This document shows, one piece after another, positions 6,908 through 55,259 of a stretch of DNA of 64,000 nucleotides (the first letter of the stretch is position 1; each line of letters opens with the position of its first letter). Origin of the DNA: Bacillus subtilis subsp. subtilis str. 168 (GTDB lineage Bacteria; Bacillota; Bacilli; Bacillales; Bacillaceae). The translations under genes and the position numbers were made by a program. Under the pieces are notes generated by a model, which saw nothing but the letters and a program-made list of their open reading frames with translations, did not search any database and was not told the DNA's origin. The stretch covers positions 496,001 through 560,000 of the forward strand of contig NC_000964.3 in assembly GCF_000009045.1 (NCBI RefSeq), in the 5' to 3' direction.

Positions 6908-7834
6908 ATGGCTGAGCCGATTTTACATATTGAAGGCCTCGATAAAAAAATTGGGTCTAAACAGATTTTAAAACAGATCAGCATGGACGTCATGGAGGGT
7001 GAAATCATCGGCCTTCTCGGTCCGAATGGTTCCGGAAAAACAACACTCATCCGTATCATCGTCGGGCTGTTGAAACAAAACAGCGGAAGCGTGACAATCA
7101 GCGGATTCCAGCATGATACAGAGTTTGAAAAAGCGATGGAAGCGGTTGGAGCGATTGTTGAGAACCCTGAGTTCTATCCGTACCTGACAGGCTGGGAAAA
7201 CCTCAAGCACTTTGCGAATATGCACAAAAAAATAGCGGATGAACGGCTTGATGAAGTGGTGGAACGTGTCGGGCTGACGTCAGCGATTCATGATAAGGTG
7301 AAAACCTATTCCCTTGGGATGCGCCAGCGTCTGGGAATCGCCCAGGCAATTCTTCACCGGCCGAAGCTTCTCATTCTAGATGAACCGACAAACGGCCTCG
7401 ATCCTGCGGGGATGAAGGATTTTCGGGATCATATTAAGGAACTCGCAGAAATGGAAGGAACAGCTGTCCTGTTCGCCACTCATTTATTGCGCGAGGTTGA
7501 AGACTTGTGCGACCGTGTCATCATCATTCAAAAAGGTGAGATCAAAGCGGAAGTCAGCTTACAAGGAACCGATCAAACCACAGAAAAAGCGATTATAGAA
7601 GTGCAGCCGCAAGAAAAAGCGCTCAATTGGCTGACAGGCAATCAATATCAAGCTGAGAGCCAAGACGGGACGATTGTAGTTGAGGTGGCAAAAGAAAACA
7701 TACCGGAGCTGAACCGATCACTTGTCGGACAAGATCTGAATGTATTTTCCATTACGCCTTACACGCAGTCACTGGAAGACGAATTTATAAAAGCGACAAC
7801 AGCTCATCAAGAGGAGGGAGAAGAGCTTGTCTAA
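6908..7834 (+). CDS. ydbJ: ABC transporter ATP-binding protein
   Basis: GPNGSGKT Walker A, YSLGMRQ signature, LILDEP Walker B. ATG at 6908 follows RBS AAAGGAGG. Confidence 0.92.
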   Translation: MAEPILHIEGLDKKIGSKQILKQISMDVMEGEIIGLLGPNGSGKTTLIRIIVGLLKQNSGSVTISGFQHDTEFEKAMEAVGAIVENPEFYPYLTGWENLKHFANMHKKIADERLDEVVERVGLTSAIHDKVKTYSLGMRQRLGIAQAILHRPKLLILDEPTNGLDPAGMKDFRDHIKELAEMEGTAVLFATHLLREVEDLCDRVIIIQKGEIKAEVSLQGTDQTTEKAIIEVQPQEKALNWLTGNQYQAESQDGTIVVEVAKENIPELNRSLVGQDLNVFSITPYTQSLEDEFIKATTAHQEEGEELV

Positions 7835-8594
7835 ATTAATTTGGAATGAACATATGAAACTTTTTAATCGGAAGGTCACTTTGGTTTCTCTTATCCTGAT
7901 GGCTGTCTTTCAATTCTTCATGGCATTGATCATTAAACGGATTGTCATCAGTGCCGGAACAGATGAAAACTTCATCGGCTATTTATCGTATACACCGAGC
8001 CTGAACATTTTGCTGCAGGCTTTAACGATCGTAATTGCAGCAACAATTGTTTCGATGGAATTTGATAAAAAGACGATCAAATTTTTGCTCATTCGTCCGG
8101 TTAAACGCCAAAAGGTCTTTTGGTCAAAATTAATCACAGTCGTGATGGTCAGCTTCTATTTGTATTTGGCATACTACATTCTGGCATTATTATTCGGTCT
8201 CTTGTTTTTTGGCACATCGGTGACTGCGGAATCAAAGACATTGCTGGTCAACACCTTGGCGCTGATCGGGTCAAACTGGCTTGAAGCTGTAATGATGGGA
8301 TTATTCGGGCTGCTTTGTTCTTCGCTGTTCCGCAATAGCGCGGTAGCAGTTGTTGTTTCTTTTGTCGTTTTATACGGAGCGAGTACACTTGTTCAGCTCA
8401 TGAAGTTGTTTGAAAACAAGTGGGGCAGCTTTTTGCTTTTTGCGAACACTGACTTTACGCAATACAGAAGCGGAGAGACAGCGTTGTTTTCAGGCATGAC
8501 GCCATTGTTTTCAATTGGAATTCTCATCATACATGCCATATTCTTCATCGTTGTTGGCTGGTGGTGCTTCTGTAAACGGGATGTTCGGGTCTAA
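7827..8594 (+). CDS. ydbK: ABC-2 type permease
   Basis: Hydrophobic protein with EFDKKTIKFLLIRP motif; overlaps the ydbJ stop. Confidence 0.88.
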   Translation: MSKLIWNEHMKLFNRKVTLVSLILMAVFQFFMALIIKRIVISAGTDENFIGYLSYTPSLNILLQALTIVIAATIVSMEFDKKTIKFLLIRPVKRQKVFWSKLITVVMVSFYLYLAYYILALLFGLLFFGTSVTAESKTLLVNTLALIGSNWLEAVMMGLFGLLCSSLFRNSAVAVVVSFVVLYGASTLVQLMKLFENKWGSFLLFANTDFTQYRSGETALFSGMTPLFSIGILIIHAIFFIVVGWWCFCKRDVRV

Positions 8595-9151: not shown

Positions 9152-10297
9152 ATGTCATTATTTATACAAAACGATCAACAGCGGCAATGGATGGAGAAAA
9201 TCGGACGGATTGCGGATGAATTTCAGCAAACAGCTGCTGAAGATGACGAACAGGGACGTTTTCCTGCAGAGAAAATACAAAAACTGCGTGATGCTGGGTA
9301 TACAGCATTAACATTGCCGGCATCTCATGGCGGAGGGGGCATTTCTGTTTACGATATGCTCTTGTTTCAAGAACGGCTTGCACGGGGAGATGCTCCGACG
9401 GCTCTTAGCATCGGCTGGCATTTGAGCGTGATCGGGGAGCTTGGAGAAGGCAACAGCTGGGATGAAGACGTATTTGCATTTGTTGCCAAGGAAGTCCAAA
9501 ACGGAGCCGTCATTAACAGGGCGGCGACTGAAGCGAAAACCGGAAGCCCGACAAGAGGAGGGCGTCCCGGTACACACGCCGTCAAAAAGGATGGCAAATG
9601 GGCAGTGAACGGGAGAAAAACCTTTACGACGATGTCACAAGCTCTGGATTATTTTTTAGTAACCGCATGGATTGAGGACAAACAAACAACAGGCGTGTTT
9701 CTCATTCATAAAGATGATCCCGGCTTGTCGATTGAAGAAACGTGGGATATGATGGCGATGCGGGCGACTGGGAGCCATGACCTTGTACTGAACGAAGTAA
9801 TGCTTGATGAGAATAAGCTGGTGGAACTGCTTCAAGGGCCTCGTGGAGCTAAGCCGAATGGCTGGCTGCTTCACATTCCTGCGATTTATCTTGGTGTGGC
9901 TCAAGCTGCTCGTGACTATGCAGTGCAATTTGCATCTGAGTATTCTCCAAACAGCTTGAATGGACCGATCAAGAATGTCCCGGCCGTACAGCAAAGAACA
10001 GGCGAAATGGAGCTTGAACTGCTCAATGCCAGACACTTTCTTTTCCATATCGCTCAATTGTATGACGATCCGGTGCGGCGTCCACACTTGACCAGCGAGC
10101 TCGGTGCGGCGAAACATATCGTCACAAACGCTGCGCTGTCTGTTGTTGATAAAGCGATGAGAATTGTCGGGGCCAAAAGCCTGGAACGAACCAACCCGCT
10201 TCAGCGCTATTACCGTGATGTGCGCGCCGGTCTTCACAACCCGCCGATGGATGACGCCGTGATACACAAGCTGGCAGCTGAAGCGTTTGAGTCATAA
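9152..10297 (+). CDS. ydbM: Acyl-CoA dehydrogenase family protein
   Basis: VNGRKTFTT, MRATGSH and LQRYYRDVR motifs. Confidence 0.9.
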   Translation: MSLFIQNDQQRQWMEKIGRIADEFQQTAAEDDEQGRFPAEKIQKLRDAGYTALTLPASHGGGGISVYDMLLFQERLARGDAPTALSIGWHLSVIGELGEGNSWDEDVFAFVAKEVQNGAVINRAATEAKTGSPTRGGRPGTHAVKKDGKWAVNGRKTFTTMSQALDYFLVTAWIEDKQTTGVFLIHKDDPGLSIEETWDMMAMRATGSHDLVLNEVMLDENKLVELLQGPRGAKPNGWLLHIPAIYLGVAQAARDYAVQFASEYSPNSLNGPIKNVPAVQQRTGEMELELLNARHFLFHIAQLYDDPVRRPHLTSELGAAKHIVTNAALSVVDKAMRIVGAKSLERTNPLQRYYRDVRAGLHNPPMDDAVIHKLAAEAFES

Positions 10298-12226: not shown

Positions 12227-13312
12227 TTGAAAACAAGTCTAGGATTAGTGTACGGAGGAAAGTCGGCAGAACATAATGTTTCCCTGCAGACAGCTCTGGC
12301 TGTAATCAAAGCGCTAAATACTGAGAAGTTTGATATACATCCGATTTATATAACAGAAAAAGGCGAATGGGTTAGAGGCGCCCGTTTAACTGAACCTGTT
12401 TCAAACGTGAAAATGCTTCAATTTGAGCAAGGAGGCAGTGCTTTTTCTCCAGCTGCCCTGAACCAGGAGATGTTTCCGCAGGAAGCGTCACAGCAAAATG
12501 AAGCCATCGACGTCGTATTCCCGCTCCTCCACGGACCGAACGGAGAAGACGGTACGATCCAGGGAATGCTCGAGCTGTTGAACATTCCTTATGTCGGCAA
12601 CGGAGTGCTTGCTTCCTCAGCTGGCATGGATAAAGTTGTCATGAAACATTTATTTGCGCAGGTTGGCCTTGCTCAGGCTAAATACGCAGCTTTCCTTAAG
12701 AAAGACTGGACTCGTTCTCCGAAAGAAAGCTGTGAGGAGGTTGAACAGGAATTAGGCTACCCTTGCTTCGTAAAACCGGCGAACCTCGGCTCAAGTGTCG
12801 GAATCAGCAAATGCCGAAACCGTGAAGAACTGCAAAAAGCGTTTGAGCTTGCTTTCCAATATGACCGCAAAGTCGTCGTTGAAGAAGGAATTAACGGCCG
12901 CGAGATCGAAATCGGCGTTCTTGGAAATGATGATCCTAAATGCTCTGTTGTGGGAGAAATCGCACCGAAGACAGATTTCTACGATTACAAAGCGAAATAT
13001 GAGGATGGAGATACTGATCTGATGATTCCGGCGATTGTGACTGATGAGGAATACGCAACAATCAGTGATATGGCGATCAAAGCGTTTAAAGCGATCGACG
13101 GTTCAGGACTCGTCAGAGCGGACTTTTTCCTGACAGCTGACGGCGAAGTTCTGATCAATGAAGTCAACACAATGCCTGGCTTTACACCTTTCAGCATGTT
13201 CCCGTTGCTCTGGAAAGAAGCCGGAGTGGAATATGCTGACCTGATTGAACAGCTTGTGGAGCTTGCAAAAGAACGCCACGCTGAAAAACAATTGATTAAG
13301 CATACATTCTAA
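12227..13312 (+). CDS. ddl: D-alanine--D-alanine ligase
   Basis: [23 protein letters not shown] and NEVNTMPG motifs. Confidence 0.97.
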
Positions 13313-33335: not shown

Positions 33336-33421
<86 letters not shown>

Positions 33422-33425
33422 AATG

Positions 33426-33459
33426 ATACCAAGGGTTTTGACACCCTTGGTATTTTTTT
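33426..33459. terminator. Terminator after tRNA-Leu2 (ICE left end)
   Basis: ATACCAAGGG-loop-CCCTTGGTAT followed by a T run. Confidence 0.8.
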
Positions 33460-33504
33460 GTGTTTATTTTCAAATGATTTACTGCCCACAAACTGCCCAC
33501 TTAC

Positions 33505-34611
33505 CTAAAGTAAGTCATCTAATTTATCAGCCATTTCCTTTTGCTTGTTTGGATATAGGTGTCCATAAACATCAATTGTTGTTTTTACAGAACCATGTCC
33601 TAAACGCTCTTTAATTGTTATGTAATCTTCTCCTTGGTGTATTAATAGTGCAACGTGTGAATGTCTAAAATCATGTAAACGTATAGGAGTAAGATCGCTA
33701 TCCTTGCAAAAGTATTTAATTTTCCGACTGAAAATATCTTTTCTTGAAGGTGTATCTTTATATTGAAAGATATAGGTATCATGTGAATGTCTAATACCTA
33801 ATTCATTAAACAACTCTTCTTGTGCTTCTTTCCAACGTTCTAGTAGCTTAAGCAATTTTTTATTGATGCTAACTCGCCGAATCGAATTTTTAGTTTTTGG
33901 AGTAGTAACAACAAATTGACCATCAAGCCAGGTGCACGATTTATGCACATCTATTTCTAATAAGATTTTGTCAATATCTTTCCATTGCAGGGCGAGCATT
34001 TCACCACATCTTAGTCCAGTTAAAAAAGCAACAGTGTAAAAGGTTTTAAACAATAATTGATCTTGAGGAATTAAACTAATAAATTTTTTGAATTCTTCTG
34101 GTCTCCAAAACTTCATTTTCTTTCTTGTTAAAGGTAATCGTTTAACGTTGTCACACGGATTTCTTTTTAAGATTTCTTCATGTACAGCTGTATCAAAAAT
34201 TTTGCTTAGACTAGTCATTATATTATTAACCGATTTATTGCTTAGACCTGTTTCCATTAAATGTTTTCTGAAATCAGTTATTTCTCTATGTGTGATTTTT
34301 TGTATATCAGATTTCAAAAAGTAATCAGATATATGTTTGTTTATAATGTACTTCTGATTCTGATAATAGTTTGGTTTACTATCTATTTCACAACTTGCTA
34401 AATAAATTGAAATTAGAGTCGGAAAGCTTACTGATCTGGACTTTCTTGCTCTTTCTTCTTGAAATTCTCTTCTTAATTTTGCTTCTAATTCTAAAGCCTC
34501 TTTTCTGGTTGATGCTACTGGTCTCGTCCTAATTCTTTCTCCAGTAATCGGGTCAAATCCAAAGCTAACGTCAACTTGATATTGACCATTTTCAAGTTTT
34601 TTTACAGACAT
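33505..34611 (-). CDS. int: Tyrosine recombinase integrase
   Basis: TGLRCGE, HDFRHS, LGH and VYGH catalytic motifs; corresponds to ydcL. Confidence 0.97.
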   Translation of the reverse strand: MSVKKLENGQYQVDVSFGFDPITGERIRTRPVASTRKEALELEAKLRREFQEERARKSRSVSFPTLISIYLASCEIDSKPNYYQNQKYIINKHISDYFLKSDIQKITHREITDFRKHLMETGLSNKSVNNIMTSLSKIFDTAVHEEILKRNPCDNVKRLPLTRKKMKFWRPEEFKKFISLIPQDQLLFKTFYTVAFLTGLRCGEMLALQWKDIDKILLEIDVHKSCTWLDGQFVVTTPKTKNSIRRVSINKKLLKLLERWKEAQEELFNELGIRHSHDTYIFQYKDTPSRKDIFSRKIKYFCKDSDLTPIRLHDFRHSHVALLIHQGEDYITIKERLGHGSVKTTIDVYGHLYPNKQKEMADKLDDLL

Positions 34612-52709: not shown

Positions 52710-53651
52710 GTGGGGGAAAATATGTTTAAAAAAGAAAAAGTCACAGAATACATTTGGACTATACTAATACCAACAATCATCACTTTTATCATTAGTTGGG
52801 TTGGGTCTTATTACAATGGTACTTCGACAGTTAGTATTGGACAACCTACAAAAGTTTCCGGTCAGTATATCACGCCAATAAATATAAGTCCCTATCATGA
52901 TATTAAGGAATTAAGAATAACTTTTCCGCAAAAACTAGATGTAAAACAAATTAGTTCAAATGAGCCTATAAATGTAAAATCAGATAAGAACAATATAGGA
53001 GTTGAAAGTAATTCCACTTTTGAGATTGCGAAAATCGTTGAAAATAATAGCGTTCAGTTGCTAATTACAACACAAAAAAAGTTAAACGATAAGGAAATTA
53101 GAATTGATAAAAATGGAAATAACATTTCTGTAAATTATGAATCTCAGATTGTTAATCCTGCAAAAAAACAATTAATCAATCTTATAATTACGTCATCTAT
53201 TTATTTTATAATGCTTAATATACTAGCATTGATTATGAACAAAAGATGGGATAAGTATTATGCAAAAATGAAAAATGAAATCAAAGAATTTGAGGATAAT
53301 GCAAAAGATCTTGATAAAAAATCAAAGAAGAAAAGCGAGGAATTATCGGAGCTGCGAAAGACCTTGAACCAAGCGTTTGAGGAAACTGATAGGATAAAAT
53401 ATCATGAGAAGAAAAAACAAATCCTCCTCTTAGCTAAGTTAAACGATTATAAAAAAGAACTAACCTTTTGGAGAAATACAATAAGAAAAGTTCTTTATGA
53501 ACTTCCTGATGGAGATAAAAAAGCAGATAAACTAATAGGGACAGTTACATCATCTTTAAAAACGTACGGTACAGTCGAAAAAAACGAGCATGATTATGAA
53601 AGTTTAAAAGTAGCAGCTGCCTTACTAAATGATTCTGATAAGAGATCGTAA
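52710..53651 (+). CDS. yddM: Uncharacterised membrane protein, last ICE cargo gene
   Basis: 313 aa with two TM segments and a coiled-coil C-terminal half. Confidence 0.8.
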
Positions 53652-53872
53652 TGTACTGGATTTTAATAAACTATTAGAAAGAAGATTAGCTGCAAACATC
53701 AGAACGACCAAACAATGGTGGTATGTTTATAGAGTTTAGTTGTTGAAAAGGGCGAACTATGAGTTTGCTGCCCATTTACTGCCCAGAATAAATAACAAAT
53801 CATGAAAATCAGTGTAAATAAAATAACTTAATGCTATAAATAAAGGCTTTTGTAAATAAAGATATGATTTTA

Positions 53873-53932
53873 CTAGGTTGAGGGCCTAGTGGGTGAATAA
53901 CCCGTGGAGGTTCAAGTCCTCTCGGCCGCATC
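53873..53932 (+). repeat. attR 60-bp direct repeat (3' fragment of tRNA-Leu2)
   Basis: Identical to 33362-33421. Confidence 0.96.
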
Positions 53933-53934
53933 TC

Positions 53935-53975
53935 AATAATACCAAGGGTTTAACCACCTTTGGTATTATTTTTTT
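53935..53975. terminator. Diverged copy of the attL terminator
   Basis: AATAATACCAAGGG-loop-CCTTTGGTATTATT followed by a T run. Confidence 0.7.
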
Positions 53976-54029
53976 GTGTGGAAAATACGGCTATGGGAGA
54001 AGACTTGCTCACCAAAACTCACCAGTTAC

Positions 54030-54126
54030 TTAAAGTAAGTCATCCAAACGGTCGGCGGTTCCTTCTGTTTATTAGGAAAAAGATATCCGTTCATTGTAAA
54101 AGAAACGAACCATGTCCTATTCGTTC
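54030..54126 (-). pseudogene. Integrase 3'-end remnant
   Basis: Frameshifted pieces ERIGHGS / GYLFPNKQKE / ADRLDDLL* match the Int C-terminus ERLGHGS / GHLYPNKQKE / ADKLDDLL*. Confidence 0.88.
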
Positions 54127-54135
54127 AAAAAAACT

Positions 54136-54179
54136 AAAGGGTGATACATATTATACATGATTAATATGTATCACCCTTT
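54136..54179. terminator. Perfect 18-bp inverted repeat, probable yddN terminator
   Basis: AAAGGGTGATACATATTA-N8-TAATATGTATCACCCTTT. Confidence 0.6.
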
Positions 54180-54239
54180 TCTTTCTTGTTCAACAATCGC
54201 GCTTGAGGAGAACATAAGCTAATACAACTGACTCGATTT

Positions 54240-55259
54240 CTAAAGTTGCTCCATTCTTTTTTTAAACAACTCATCCACAACCTGTTTTAAAATCTCGTAC
54301 GACTGAATTTCCTTGCTCAATTCGTAAATATTAGATAACACAATTAATTCATCTGCGTGATACATTTGTTGGAAATCAATTAGTTCGCGACGAATTGTTT
54401 CTCGATCACCCATGATTGTATACCCCAGTCGACTGTGGAGAATTTCTAATTCAAACTGTGATAACGATTCTAGGAAGTTTTCAGTGGGTGGAATAAGCTT
54501 ACTTAAATTATTTGTATAAATATCAATATACACCTGCAAATGACTTGCAGAAATAAAAGATGCCTCGTCTATAGATTCTGCTGCAATCACATTAATGCAA
54601 GCGATCACATAAGGTTCTTGTAAATAAGAAGACGGTTGGAAATTTTCTCGATAAATAGAGAGCGCTTCTTCCATCGAATGGGGTGAAAATTGAGCGCCAA
54701 ATGCATAGGGTAAACCAAGCTTTGCAGCAATTTCCGCTGAATCCGTTGAGGATCCTAACACAAAAACAGGCACATGCGTTCCAATACCCGGATAAGCGCG
54801 AACCTCACCCTGTACACTCTTATCCCCGACAAAACGCAAAATATCATTTACTTCTCTTTCAAAGAAAAACACTCCATTATGGTTGGAACGACGAATCACA
54901 TCGGCCGTTTTTTGATCCGTTCCGGGTGCGCGTCCTAATGCCAAATCTACACGATTTGGATATAATGTTTCAAGTGTTCCAAATTGCTCCGCTACGATTA
55001 ATGGGGAATGATTTGGCAACATAATACCCCCTGAACCTACGCGAATGTCTTTTGTATTTGCTAATATATGTTGTACAATTGATACGGTTGCTGCACTTGC
55101 ATAAGCGTCGTGATTATGATGCTCTGCAAACCAAATCCGTTTATAGCCCATATTATCTACAGCTTTAGCTAATGACACTGCAGAATCAATCCCTTGTTTC
55201 ATTGTTTCTCCTTGTCTTAATGGAGCAACTGATAAAACAGATATATCAAATTTTTTCAT
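54240..55259 (-). CDS. yddN: Luciferase-like (LLM) flavin-dependent oxidoreductase
   Basis: WFAEHHN, RVGSGGIML and RVDLALGRAPG motifs. Confidence 0.9.
   Translation of the reverse strand: MKKFDISVLSVAPLRQGETMKQGIDSAVSLAKAVDNMGYKRIWFAEHHNHDAYASAATVSIVQHILANTKDIRVGSGGIMLPNHSPLIVAEQFGTLETLYPNRVDLALGRAPGTDQKTADVIRRSNHNGVFFFEREVNDILRFVGDKSVQGEVRAYPGIGTHVPVFVLGSSTDSAEIAAKLGLPYAFGAQFSPHSMEEALSIYRENFQPSSYLQEPYVIACINVIAAESIDEASFISASHLQVYIDIYTNNLSKLIPPTENFLESLSQFELEILHSRLGYTIMGDRETIRRELIDFQQMYHADELIVLSNIYELSKEIQSYEILKQVVDELFKKRMEQL

Follow-up and report, generated by a model that had tools for sequence, protein, structure and literature searches.

Integrase remnant outside the attR of ICEBs1 in Bacillus subtilis: the probable attL end of an earlier element at trnS-leu2

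The 64 000-nucleotide stretch of DNA analysed here, called the window below, was identified by its gene content as the ICEBs1 locus of Bacillus subtilis, and ICEBs1 with its attB in trnS-leu2 is the reference system for ICE integration in Gram-positive bacteria. The integration target is the last of a cluster of seven tRNA genes, the tRNA-Leu(GAG) gene trnS-leu2, which ARAGORN placed at 33336-33419 on the plus strand. When the longest common substring of both ends of the element was searched for, a perfectly matching 60-bp direct repeat was obtained on the plus strand, with an attL copy that includes the crossover core (33362-33421) and an attR copy that corresponds to the displaced original 3' end of the tRNA gene (53873-53932), the 3' part of trnS-leu2 at attL being supplied by ICEBs1. 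The 22-nt tRNA 3' end was found in the window only at 33398-33419 and 53909-53930, even with up to three mismatches allowed, and both copies belong to ICEBs1. After attL, the element bears its own copy of the tRNA-operon terminator (33425-33454, plus strand; fold of -17.8 kcal/mol, z = -4.6), followed by the intact int gene (33505-34611, minus strand), an ORF for a 368-aa tyrosine integrase with PF00589 and PF14659 matches that served as the comparator. Genes for an ImmA-like protease and an ImmR-like repressor adjoin int, making up the immA/immR/int left end, and the right end, about 20 kb further on, carries genes for a Rap protein, a small Phr-like ORF and a 313-aa ORF (rapI/phrI/yddM). This attL, with its core in trnS-leu2 and int, is the one described by Auchtung et al. 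(2005) and Lee et al. (2007), as summarised in PMC3715440.

Outside attR, the 60-bp repeat ends at 53932 and a scar begins at 53933. It opens with a terminator hairpin on the plus strand (53935-53970, with a T-run to 53977; fold of -18.1 kcal/mol, z = -5.7), which aligns with the hairpin of the ICEBs1 attL, in agreement with the resemblance pointed out in the initial annotation of this sequence. A tandem pair of 7-mers follows (CTCACCA-AAA-CTCACCA, 54008-54024, plus strand), as that annotation had also stated, in the place taken at attL by two copies of CTGCCCA; this pair is unique in the 64 kb, with none expected by chance. The 97 nt from 54030 to 54126, read on the minus strand, form an integrase stub, and the next bases are an A-run and then the stem of the bidirectional yddN terminator (54136-54179; fold of -27.8 kcal/mol). 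The first chromosomal gene past the scar is yddN itself (54240-55259, minus strand), an ORF for a luciferase-like monooxygenase (PF00296 in the YddN-context loci), beyond which lie two genes for AsnC-type regulators.

Translation of the minus strand of the stub in three frames gave ERIGHGS, VSFTMNGYLFPNKQKE and TADRLDDLL plus a stop, each in a different frame, the middle piece being (VSFTMN)GYLFPNKQKE, so the three frame-shifted peptides first proposed by eye are indeed encoded there. A tblastn search with the last 40 aa of ICEBs1 Int recovered the three pieces in collinear order, with E values of 0.01-0.6 for the individual peptides. When only the coding part was aligned locally as DNA with the 3' end of ICEBs1 int, a score of 31 was reached, compared to 17.3 ± 2.4 in shuffled sequences (maximum 28, n = 1000).

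The affiliation of the stub was examined among 957 relatives recovered with ICEBs1 Int, the C-termini of the best 120 being compared with a conceptual reading of the stub in which an X was placed at each frameshift. The best two of these 120 were P0016 of B. velezensis (28/31; tail ...GHGSVAFTMNTYGHLFPNKQKETADRLDDLL) and P0013 of B. inaquosorum (27/31; tail ...GHSSVSFTMNTYGHLFPNKQKETADRLDHLL). The stub and P0016 have in common a lineage-specific FTMN, whereas ICEBs1 Int and its near relatives match the stub at 23/31 positions and have KTTIDVY in that place. Overall, P0016 and P0013 show 54-55% amino acid identity to ICEBs1 Int, and "type B" is used here as a label for this second integrase lineage of the ICEBs1 family.

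The DNA comparisons gave the same affiliation. By blastn, the int 3' end and attL flank of B. rugosus SPB7 matched window positions 54126-53931 with 92.2% identity over 204 nt (E = 7e-81), and the corresponding B. velezensis sequence matched with 87.3% identity (E = 7e-68), whereas both queries were only 68-71% identical to the attL of ICEBs1 itself (68% for B. rugosus). Within the 97-nt stub, 91 bases are identical in B. rugosus (94%) and 90 in B. velezensis, compared to 69 of 91 (~76%) in a gappy alignment with ICEBs1 int. In a maximum-likelihood tree of the last 105 nt, the stub was placed inside the type-B clade with 100/100 support and apart from ICEBs1 int. The search for intact alleles and the tree suggested at the outset thus led to a lineage that is still intact elsewhere, and a highly significant, gap-tolerant alignment to tyrosine integrases was obtained in spite of three deletions. 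The many differences from ICEBs1 int had been read initially as a sign of a separate and older allele; the separate lineage was borne out, but the differences do not reflect a long decay of the same gene.

Three deletions, of 1, 6 and 1 nt, set the stub apart from the intact type-B alleles. The first deletion, near 54107/8, falls in the Ser codon that follows GH and shifts the frame; the second, near 54089-91, removes the Thr-Tyr codons and with them the catalytic tyrosine, which aligns with Tyr349 of ICEBs1 Int; and the third, near 54061, affects the Thr codon preceding ADRLDDLL and again shifts the frame. The alignment leaves a two-base ambiguity in where the 6-nt gap falls, and an alternative gap that keeps the Tyr codon and deletes Gly-His instead costs 2-3 more substitutions. 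The catalytic Tyr codon is accordingly missing, as had been noticed, when the closest intact alleles are taken as reference. Homology to PF00589 is kept in ERxGH and FPNKQKE...ADRLDDLL* (box II region), and no intact frame with the catalytic Arg-His-Arg-Tyr set is present in the stub, where 34 of 368 codons are left and residues 1-334 are missing. As the int homology ends abruptly at 54126 and none is found beyond, the stub comprises codons 335-368 and the stop codon only, and the deletion junction that truncated it lies at 54126/54127, just before the yddN terminator. Judged by its sequence, the stub is a pseudogene fragment and not a gene.

Intact type-B int genes were found at tRNA-Leu(GAG) in B. 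rugosus (strain SPB7, locus L007), B. velezensis (GCA_037095775.1, loci L005, L087 and L089), B. inaquosorum and others. In the B. velezensis genome, int is followed by genes for ImmA- and ImmR-like proteins, a DUF961 protein, a 473-aa ORF without recorded Pfam match and a Rep_trans relaxase, and further on by TcpC-, TcpE- and AAA_10-type conjugation proteins, a cell-wall hydrolase, a Rap protein and a second copy of the tRNA end; the left end of the B. rugosus element has the same gene order. By this gene content, type-B integrases appear as genuine ICE integrases of the ICEBs1 family that use the same tRNA. Intact copies are common, because the 90%-identity clusters of P0013 and P0016 hold full-length members, with source names including B. 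subtilis, B. atrophaeus, B. halotolerans, B. velezensis, B. amyloliquefaciens and B. nakamurai. Further loci were brought in by a genome scan based on the neighbouring SprT (YdcK) protein, among whose listed matches some of the species representatives of the B. subtilis group were present. A metagenome scan for the arm 24-mer gave two contigs with a type-B int adjoining tRNA-Leu and free of the three deletions of the stub, and no new junction type was seen in these two contigs.

Another type-B variant, P0124, comes from sources named B. subtilis and ends in ...ADRLDELL* (L090-L094; e.g. AP014694.1 and CP026010.1). These loci have an ICE-like left end, with Peptidase_C92, DUF3139 and YesK genes past the int stop, and in the 3 kb next to that stop neither a tRNA-Leu end nor arm repeats are present. 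Either cargo lies there between int and attL, or a different site is used. With its other 3' flank, P0124 gave no example of a type-B ICE adjoining the stub.

The terminator and the 7-mer pair follow the same lineage as the stub. An identical 18-mer, CTCACCAAAACTCACCAG, was found at the attL of five type-B loci (L005, L007, L009, L095 and L096); together with a near-identical terminator it lies between the int stop and the tRNA in B. rugosus, B. velezensis and the two metagenome contigs, and the arrangement recurs at a half-length int fossil of B. siamensis. The attR-flank terminator is also nearly identical to that of the type-B attL in B. rugosus and B. inaquosorum. Because intact type-B elements share both terminator and 18-mer in this place, positions 53933-54126 can be considered as a single unit that formed the attL end of a type-B element, and the initial assignment of the terminator and the arm-like repeats to the fossil holds. 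In cells free of ICEBs1, the tRNA operon probably uses the 53935-53970 hairpin as its terminator; where the element is present, this task passes to the ICEBs1-borne copy after attL.

Regarding the 7-mers, CTGCCCA-NNN-CTGCCCA pairs occur twice in the 64 kb, where none is expected, once per ICEBs1 arm and in the same orientation: one at 33482-33499 (plus strand, 61 nt inside attL) and one at 53768-53785 (plus strand, 105 nt before the attR repeat). In the type-B ICE, GCTCACCATTTTTTAACCA lies 106 nt before the attR repeat, a place equivalent to that of the inner attR pair of ICEBs1. The 7-mer type follows the int lineage at both ends, and the core is constant. Between ICEBs1 and type-B Int, identity is 33% in the N-terminal 60 aa, 52% in residues 61-175 and 61-63% in the catalytic part, and within type B the N-terminal 60 aa are 93% identical; residues 11-53 of type-B Int gave a near-threshold match to Arm-DNA-bind_4 (PF14657; 20.8 bits vs. 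a cut-off of 22.3). Position, rarity, co-variation with the int lineage and divergence of the N-terminus indicate that the 7-mer pairs are likely arm-type Int sites, those of ICEBs1 itself at CTGCCCA and those of the extinct type-B element at CTCACCA. Arm-type sites in ICEBs1 are not mentioned in the literature searched.

An exact-sequence look-up of YddN gave four distinct contexts among 24 contigs. Two ICEBs1-free loci, L001 (GCA_009914705.1) and L003 (GCA_022163605.1), have an intact tRNA gene followed directly by terminator, repeat pair and stub, L001 being identical to the window over the whole 310-nt test region and L003 showing 96/97 identity in the stub. The stub is not part of ICEBs1, as it persists in both. 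Because ICEBs1-free genomes keep it, the stub belongs to the chromosomal flank of attB and predates the insertion of ICEBs1, so "older" was a correct description as far as it means that the site had been occupied before. No third att copy was found in the 10 kb past the stub with up to three mismatches allowed, and the remnant is not excisable by site-specific recombination because its second att copy is gone. Among the loci examined, the stub was seen in B. subtilis contexts only; those of B. spizizenii and B. inaquosorum have different stubs, which are shorter.

The reverse order was detected in B. velezensis (L089, 12826-13300), where an ICEBs1-type scar lies past the attR of an intact type-B ICE. 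In this scar (12880-13300), a terminator and CTGCCCACAAACTGCCCAC precede the last five int codons, worded as in ICEBs1 (CTTACCTAAAGTAAGTCATCT), and then come fragments of the rapI 3' end and of phrI. As both orders occur, ICEBs1 and type-B elements replace each other and leave remains. From these sequences, we infer that type B occupied the site earlier than ICEBs1 in B. subtilis, and later than ICEBs1 in one strain of B. velezensis.

Taken together, the interval 53933-54126 is very probably the leftover attL end of an earlier type-B element of the ICEBs1 family. A type-B ICE would first have entered the 3' end of trnS-leu2, bringing a replacement tRNA 3' end, a terminator, two putative CTCACCA arm-type sites and an int gene reading towards the tRNA. 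A deletion reaching from int codon 334 over the remainder of the element, attR included, would then have joined the stub to the yddN terminator. Because tRNA and core remained intact, the site would have stayed a working attB, in which ICEBs1, with the same core and putative CTGCCCA arm sites, would have integrated, pushing the old flank outside its attR. As to alternative timing, the deletion could also have taken place after the arrival of ICEBs1, in a tandem array.

Related scars were found in other species, and all those examined had the same order of tRNA end, hairpin, tandem 7-mer pair and int stop codon. The order of terminator, 7-mer pair and int stop, with int antiparallel to the tRNA, was common to ICEBs1 and loci L005, L007, L009, L010, L071 and L081, the repeat unit differing by lineage (CTGCCCA, CTCACCA, ACTCCA, GTGTCCA or TGCCCA). 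The length of int that is left varies: the C-terminal 183 codons of a type-B int in B. siamensis, about 21 codons each in B. swezeyi and B. paralicheniformis, and about four codons only in B. spizizenii TU-B-10 and one B. inaquosorum strain. Bacillus sp. WMMC1349 (L081, 7640-9700) has stacked stubs, residues 168-368 and then 331-368, and a second copy of the tRNA end (9609-9630) with two TGCCCA and a few int codons; by sequence, at least three layers of occupation appear at this site.

Several of these loci have features of their own. The empty site of B. spizizenii TU-B-10 (L008, 7306-7420) has an ICEBs1-like terminator, degenerate repeats (GTGACCA/GTGTCGA) and about 11 nt of an int end, and its downstream genes (MFS transporter, SDR, hydrolase, TetR) differ from those of the yddN region of B. 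subtilis. In B. inaquosorum GCA_026794805.1 (L006, 2200-4330), the tRNA is followed by a type-B terminator, two CTCACCA and about 12 nt of int, then by two unrelated ORFs (234 and 273 aa) and an intact type-B int with a 3' flank of its own, without arm repeats or tRNA end. In B. swezeyi (L010, 7219-9372), the tRNA 3' end recurs at a distance of about 2.1 kb, and an int stub and a 213-aa GH11-xylanase-like ORF (7695-8336) are found between the two copies; this islet, att-flanked and without integrase, looks CIME-like. When 53860-54200 was searched in a phage collection by distant blastn, only the tRNA end and the terminator were matched (Listeria and Staphylococcus contigs and a cyanophage tRNA-Leu), and no match to the stub was obtained. 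Three contigs of that collection, unannotated and named "Listeria phage" or "Staphylococcus phage" (OR846815.1, OR848176.1 and OR845010.1), were 82-95% identical to the tRNA-Leu 3' end in window 53873-53972, the Listeria ones matching the terminator hairpin also. Elements with a similar tRNA-Leu attP may exist in Listeria and Staphylococcus.

The single deletion proposed above has to be weighed against a mosaic origin of the scar, a possibility that we regard as unlikely but worth setting out. An old stub would have fixed the distal junction, and homologous recombination with the int 3' end of an incoming type-B ICE would later have deleted that ICE and overwritten the proximal part, that is, terminator, arm repeats and last codons. 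Something of this kind is seen in B. swezeyi and B. paralicheniformis (compare 7219-7520 in L010 and in L071), in which the truncation junction is the same and the distal flank is about 97% identical, and yet the proximal ~85 nt are only about 55% identical and carry different arm repeats (ACTCCA vs. GTGTCCA), which suggests, from sequence comparison, that the tRNA-proximal flank was overwritten by recombination. In the window, the proximal flank has 2/97 mismatches to B. rugosus compared to 6/97 plus three indels in the stub, a difference in the direction expected for a mosaic, by which the two parts could be of different age, although it is not statistically significant. Moreover, the whole 204 nt of B. 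subtilis belong to one lineage, type B. As no mosaic boundary is visible there, the single-deletion account was kept as the main one.

That the region has been kept for a function, for example with the leftover arm sites and the core as an accessory or decoy site for ICE integrases, or as a small RNA or peptide, is quite improbable. The conservation of the flank (53933-54029) at 98-100% in B. subtilis, B. rugosus and B. inaquosorum loci would agree with it, but can be explained by a recent shared origin. A 66-aa ORF on the plus strand (53960-54160) overlaps flank and stub, but has its start inside the terminator hairpin and extends over the deletion junction. A search of 53600-54400 for promoter-like sites gave none, and no Rfam match at gathering score was obtained for the stub, the sub-threshold hairpins falling on the yddN terminator and on the partial tRNA only. 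The stub also sits between convergent terminators, that of the tRNA operon and the bidirectional one of yddN, and the arbitrary stub lengths of the other species fit neutral decay. Thus, the stub most likely has no present function. In PMC3715440, Menard and Grossman treat the attB-yddN interval as non-coding and report for strain CAL522 an incidental point mutation, CAAAAAAACTAAA to ...AAG. This change is located at 54126-54138, where the int stub meets the stem of the yddN terminator.

A third explanation, that the stub is a recent and decayed duplicate of the ICEBs1 int 3' end, produced by imprecise excision or in a tandem array, would account for its orientation and its position relative to the core, which are those of ICEBs1 int at attL. 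It is refuted by the blastn search, the tree and the stub alignment, and we consider it highly improbable: the stub is far closer to type B than to ICEBs1 int, its FTMN and CTCACCA arms match type B exactly, and it is present in ICEBs1-free genomes. Finally, a chance similarity of short peptides, conceivable when each weak tblastn piece is taken singly, can be dismissed, since the pieces follow each other in collinear order, an E value of 7e-81 was obtained for the DNA match to type B, shuffled sequences never reached the observed score, and the synteny with tRNA end, terminator and repeat pair is exact.

With the leftover type-B attL end as the preferred reading, the scar has some local consequences. 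The chromosomal side of attB in strain 168 and in its ICEBs1-cured derivatives is the attL end of another ICE lineage, so the "empty" site used in experiments is not naive DNA but contains a foreign terminator and probable arm sites. The natural variants, with one core, at least five arm-repeat types and an N-terminal domain that is the most diverged, provide material for testing arm-site recognition in this family. Scars in which pieces of an integrase gene are left next to a tRNA integration site are known as a class. The int remnant beside attR is not mentioned in the literature searched; the scar adds one more case to a familiar kind of fossil, that of ICE decay and accretion, of low general and moderate local interest.

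A broader reading can be offered tentatively, although we rather doubt it: in the groups of B. subtilis, B. licheniformis and B. pumilus, the flank of trnS-leu2 could be a layered record of serial ICEs, in which int stubs would not be inert but would provide a RecA-dependent route of loss. It is based on the several int lineages that share one tRNA core and differ in their arm 7-mers. If it were true, the stubs, as direct repeats of the incoming int 3' end, would allow ICE loss that depends on RecA and not on Int, and each such loss would overwrite the tRNA-proximal flank with the terminator and arm sites of the newcomer. In that case, what passes for the "native" attB and tRNA-operon terminator in strain 168 would stem from ICEs and be exchanged periodically.

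Compared to known systems, the scar is most directly set beside the attL of ICEBs1, with which it shares the target tRNA, the 60-bp repeat with its core, the order of tRNA end, hairpin, 7-mer pair and int stop, and an int that reads towards the tRNA. It differs from that attL in its int lineage (~54% amino acid identity; stub 76% identical in nucleotides vs. 94% to type B), in its 7-mer (CTCACCA, not CTGCCCA), in 13 extra nt between terminator and repeats, and in that 34 broken codons are all that is left of int. With intact type-B elements, it has in common the site and an int 3' end, arm pair and terminator that are 87-92% identical; those elements are complete, with immR, immA, relaxase, conjugation genes and rap, whereas the window keeps about 200 nt. 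Lambda-like and Tn916-like tyrosine integrases bind arm-type (P/P') sites, which are short direct repeats about one helical turn apart. The ICEBs1-family repeats resemble them in lying on both attP arms off the core and in being paired with the fastest-diverging N-terminal domain, and differ in being putative sites, proposed from position, rarity and co-variation only. Deletion of ICEs and CIMEs and their tandem accretion at one att site have been described for ICESt1/ICESt3 of Streptococcus thermophilus (Pavlovic et al., 2004; Bellanger et al., 2011) and for SXT/R391 arrays, as listed in the review PMC5812530. CIMEs have both of their att sites and are mobilisable in cis, whereas the second att copy of the scar is gone, and for this reason the scar is not a CIME. 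What it does share with these systems is that related elements arrive serially at one site and that internal deletions leave remnants beside the occupant.
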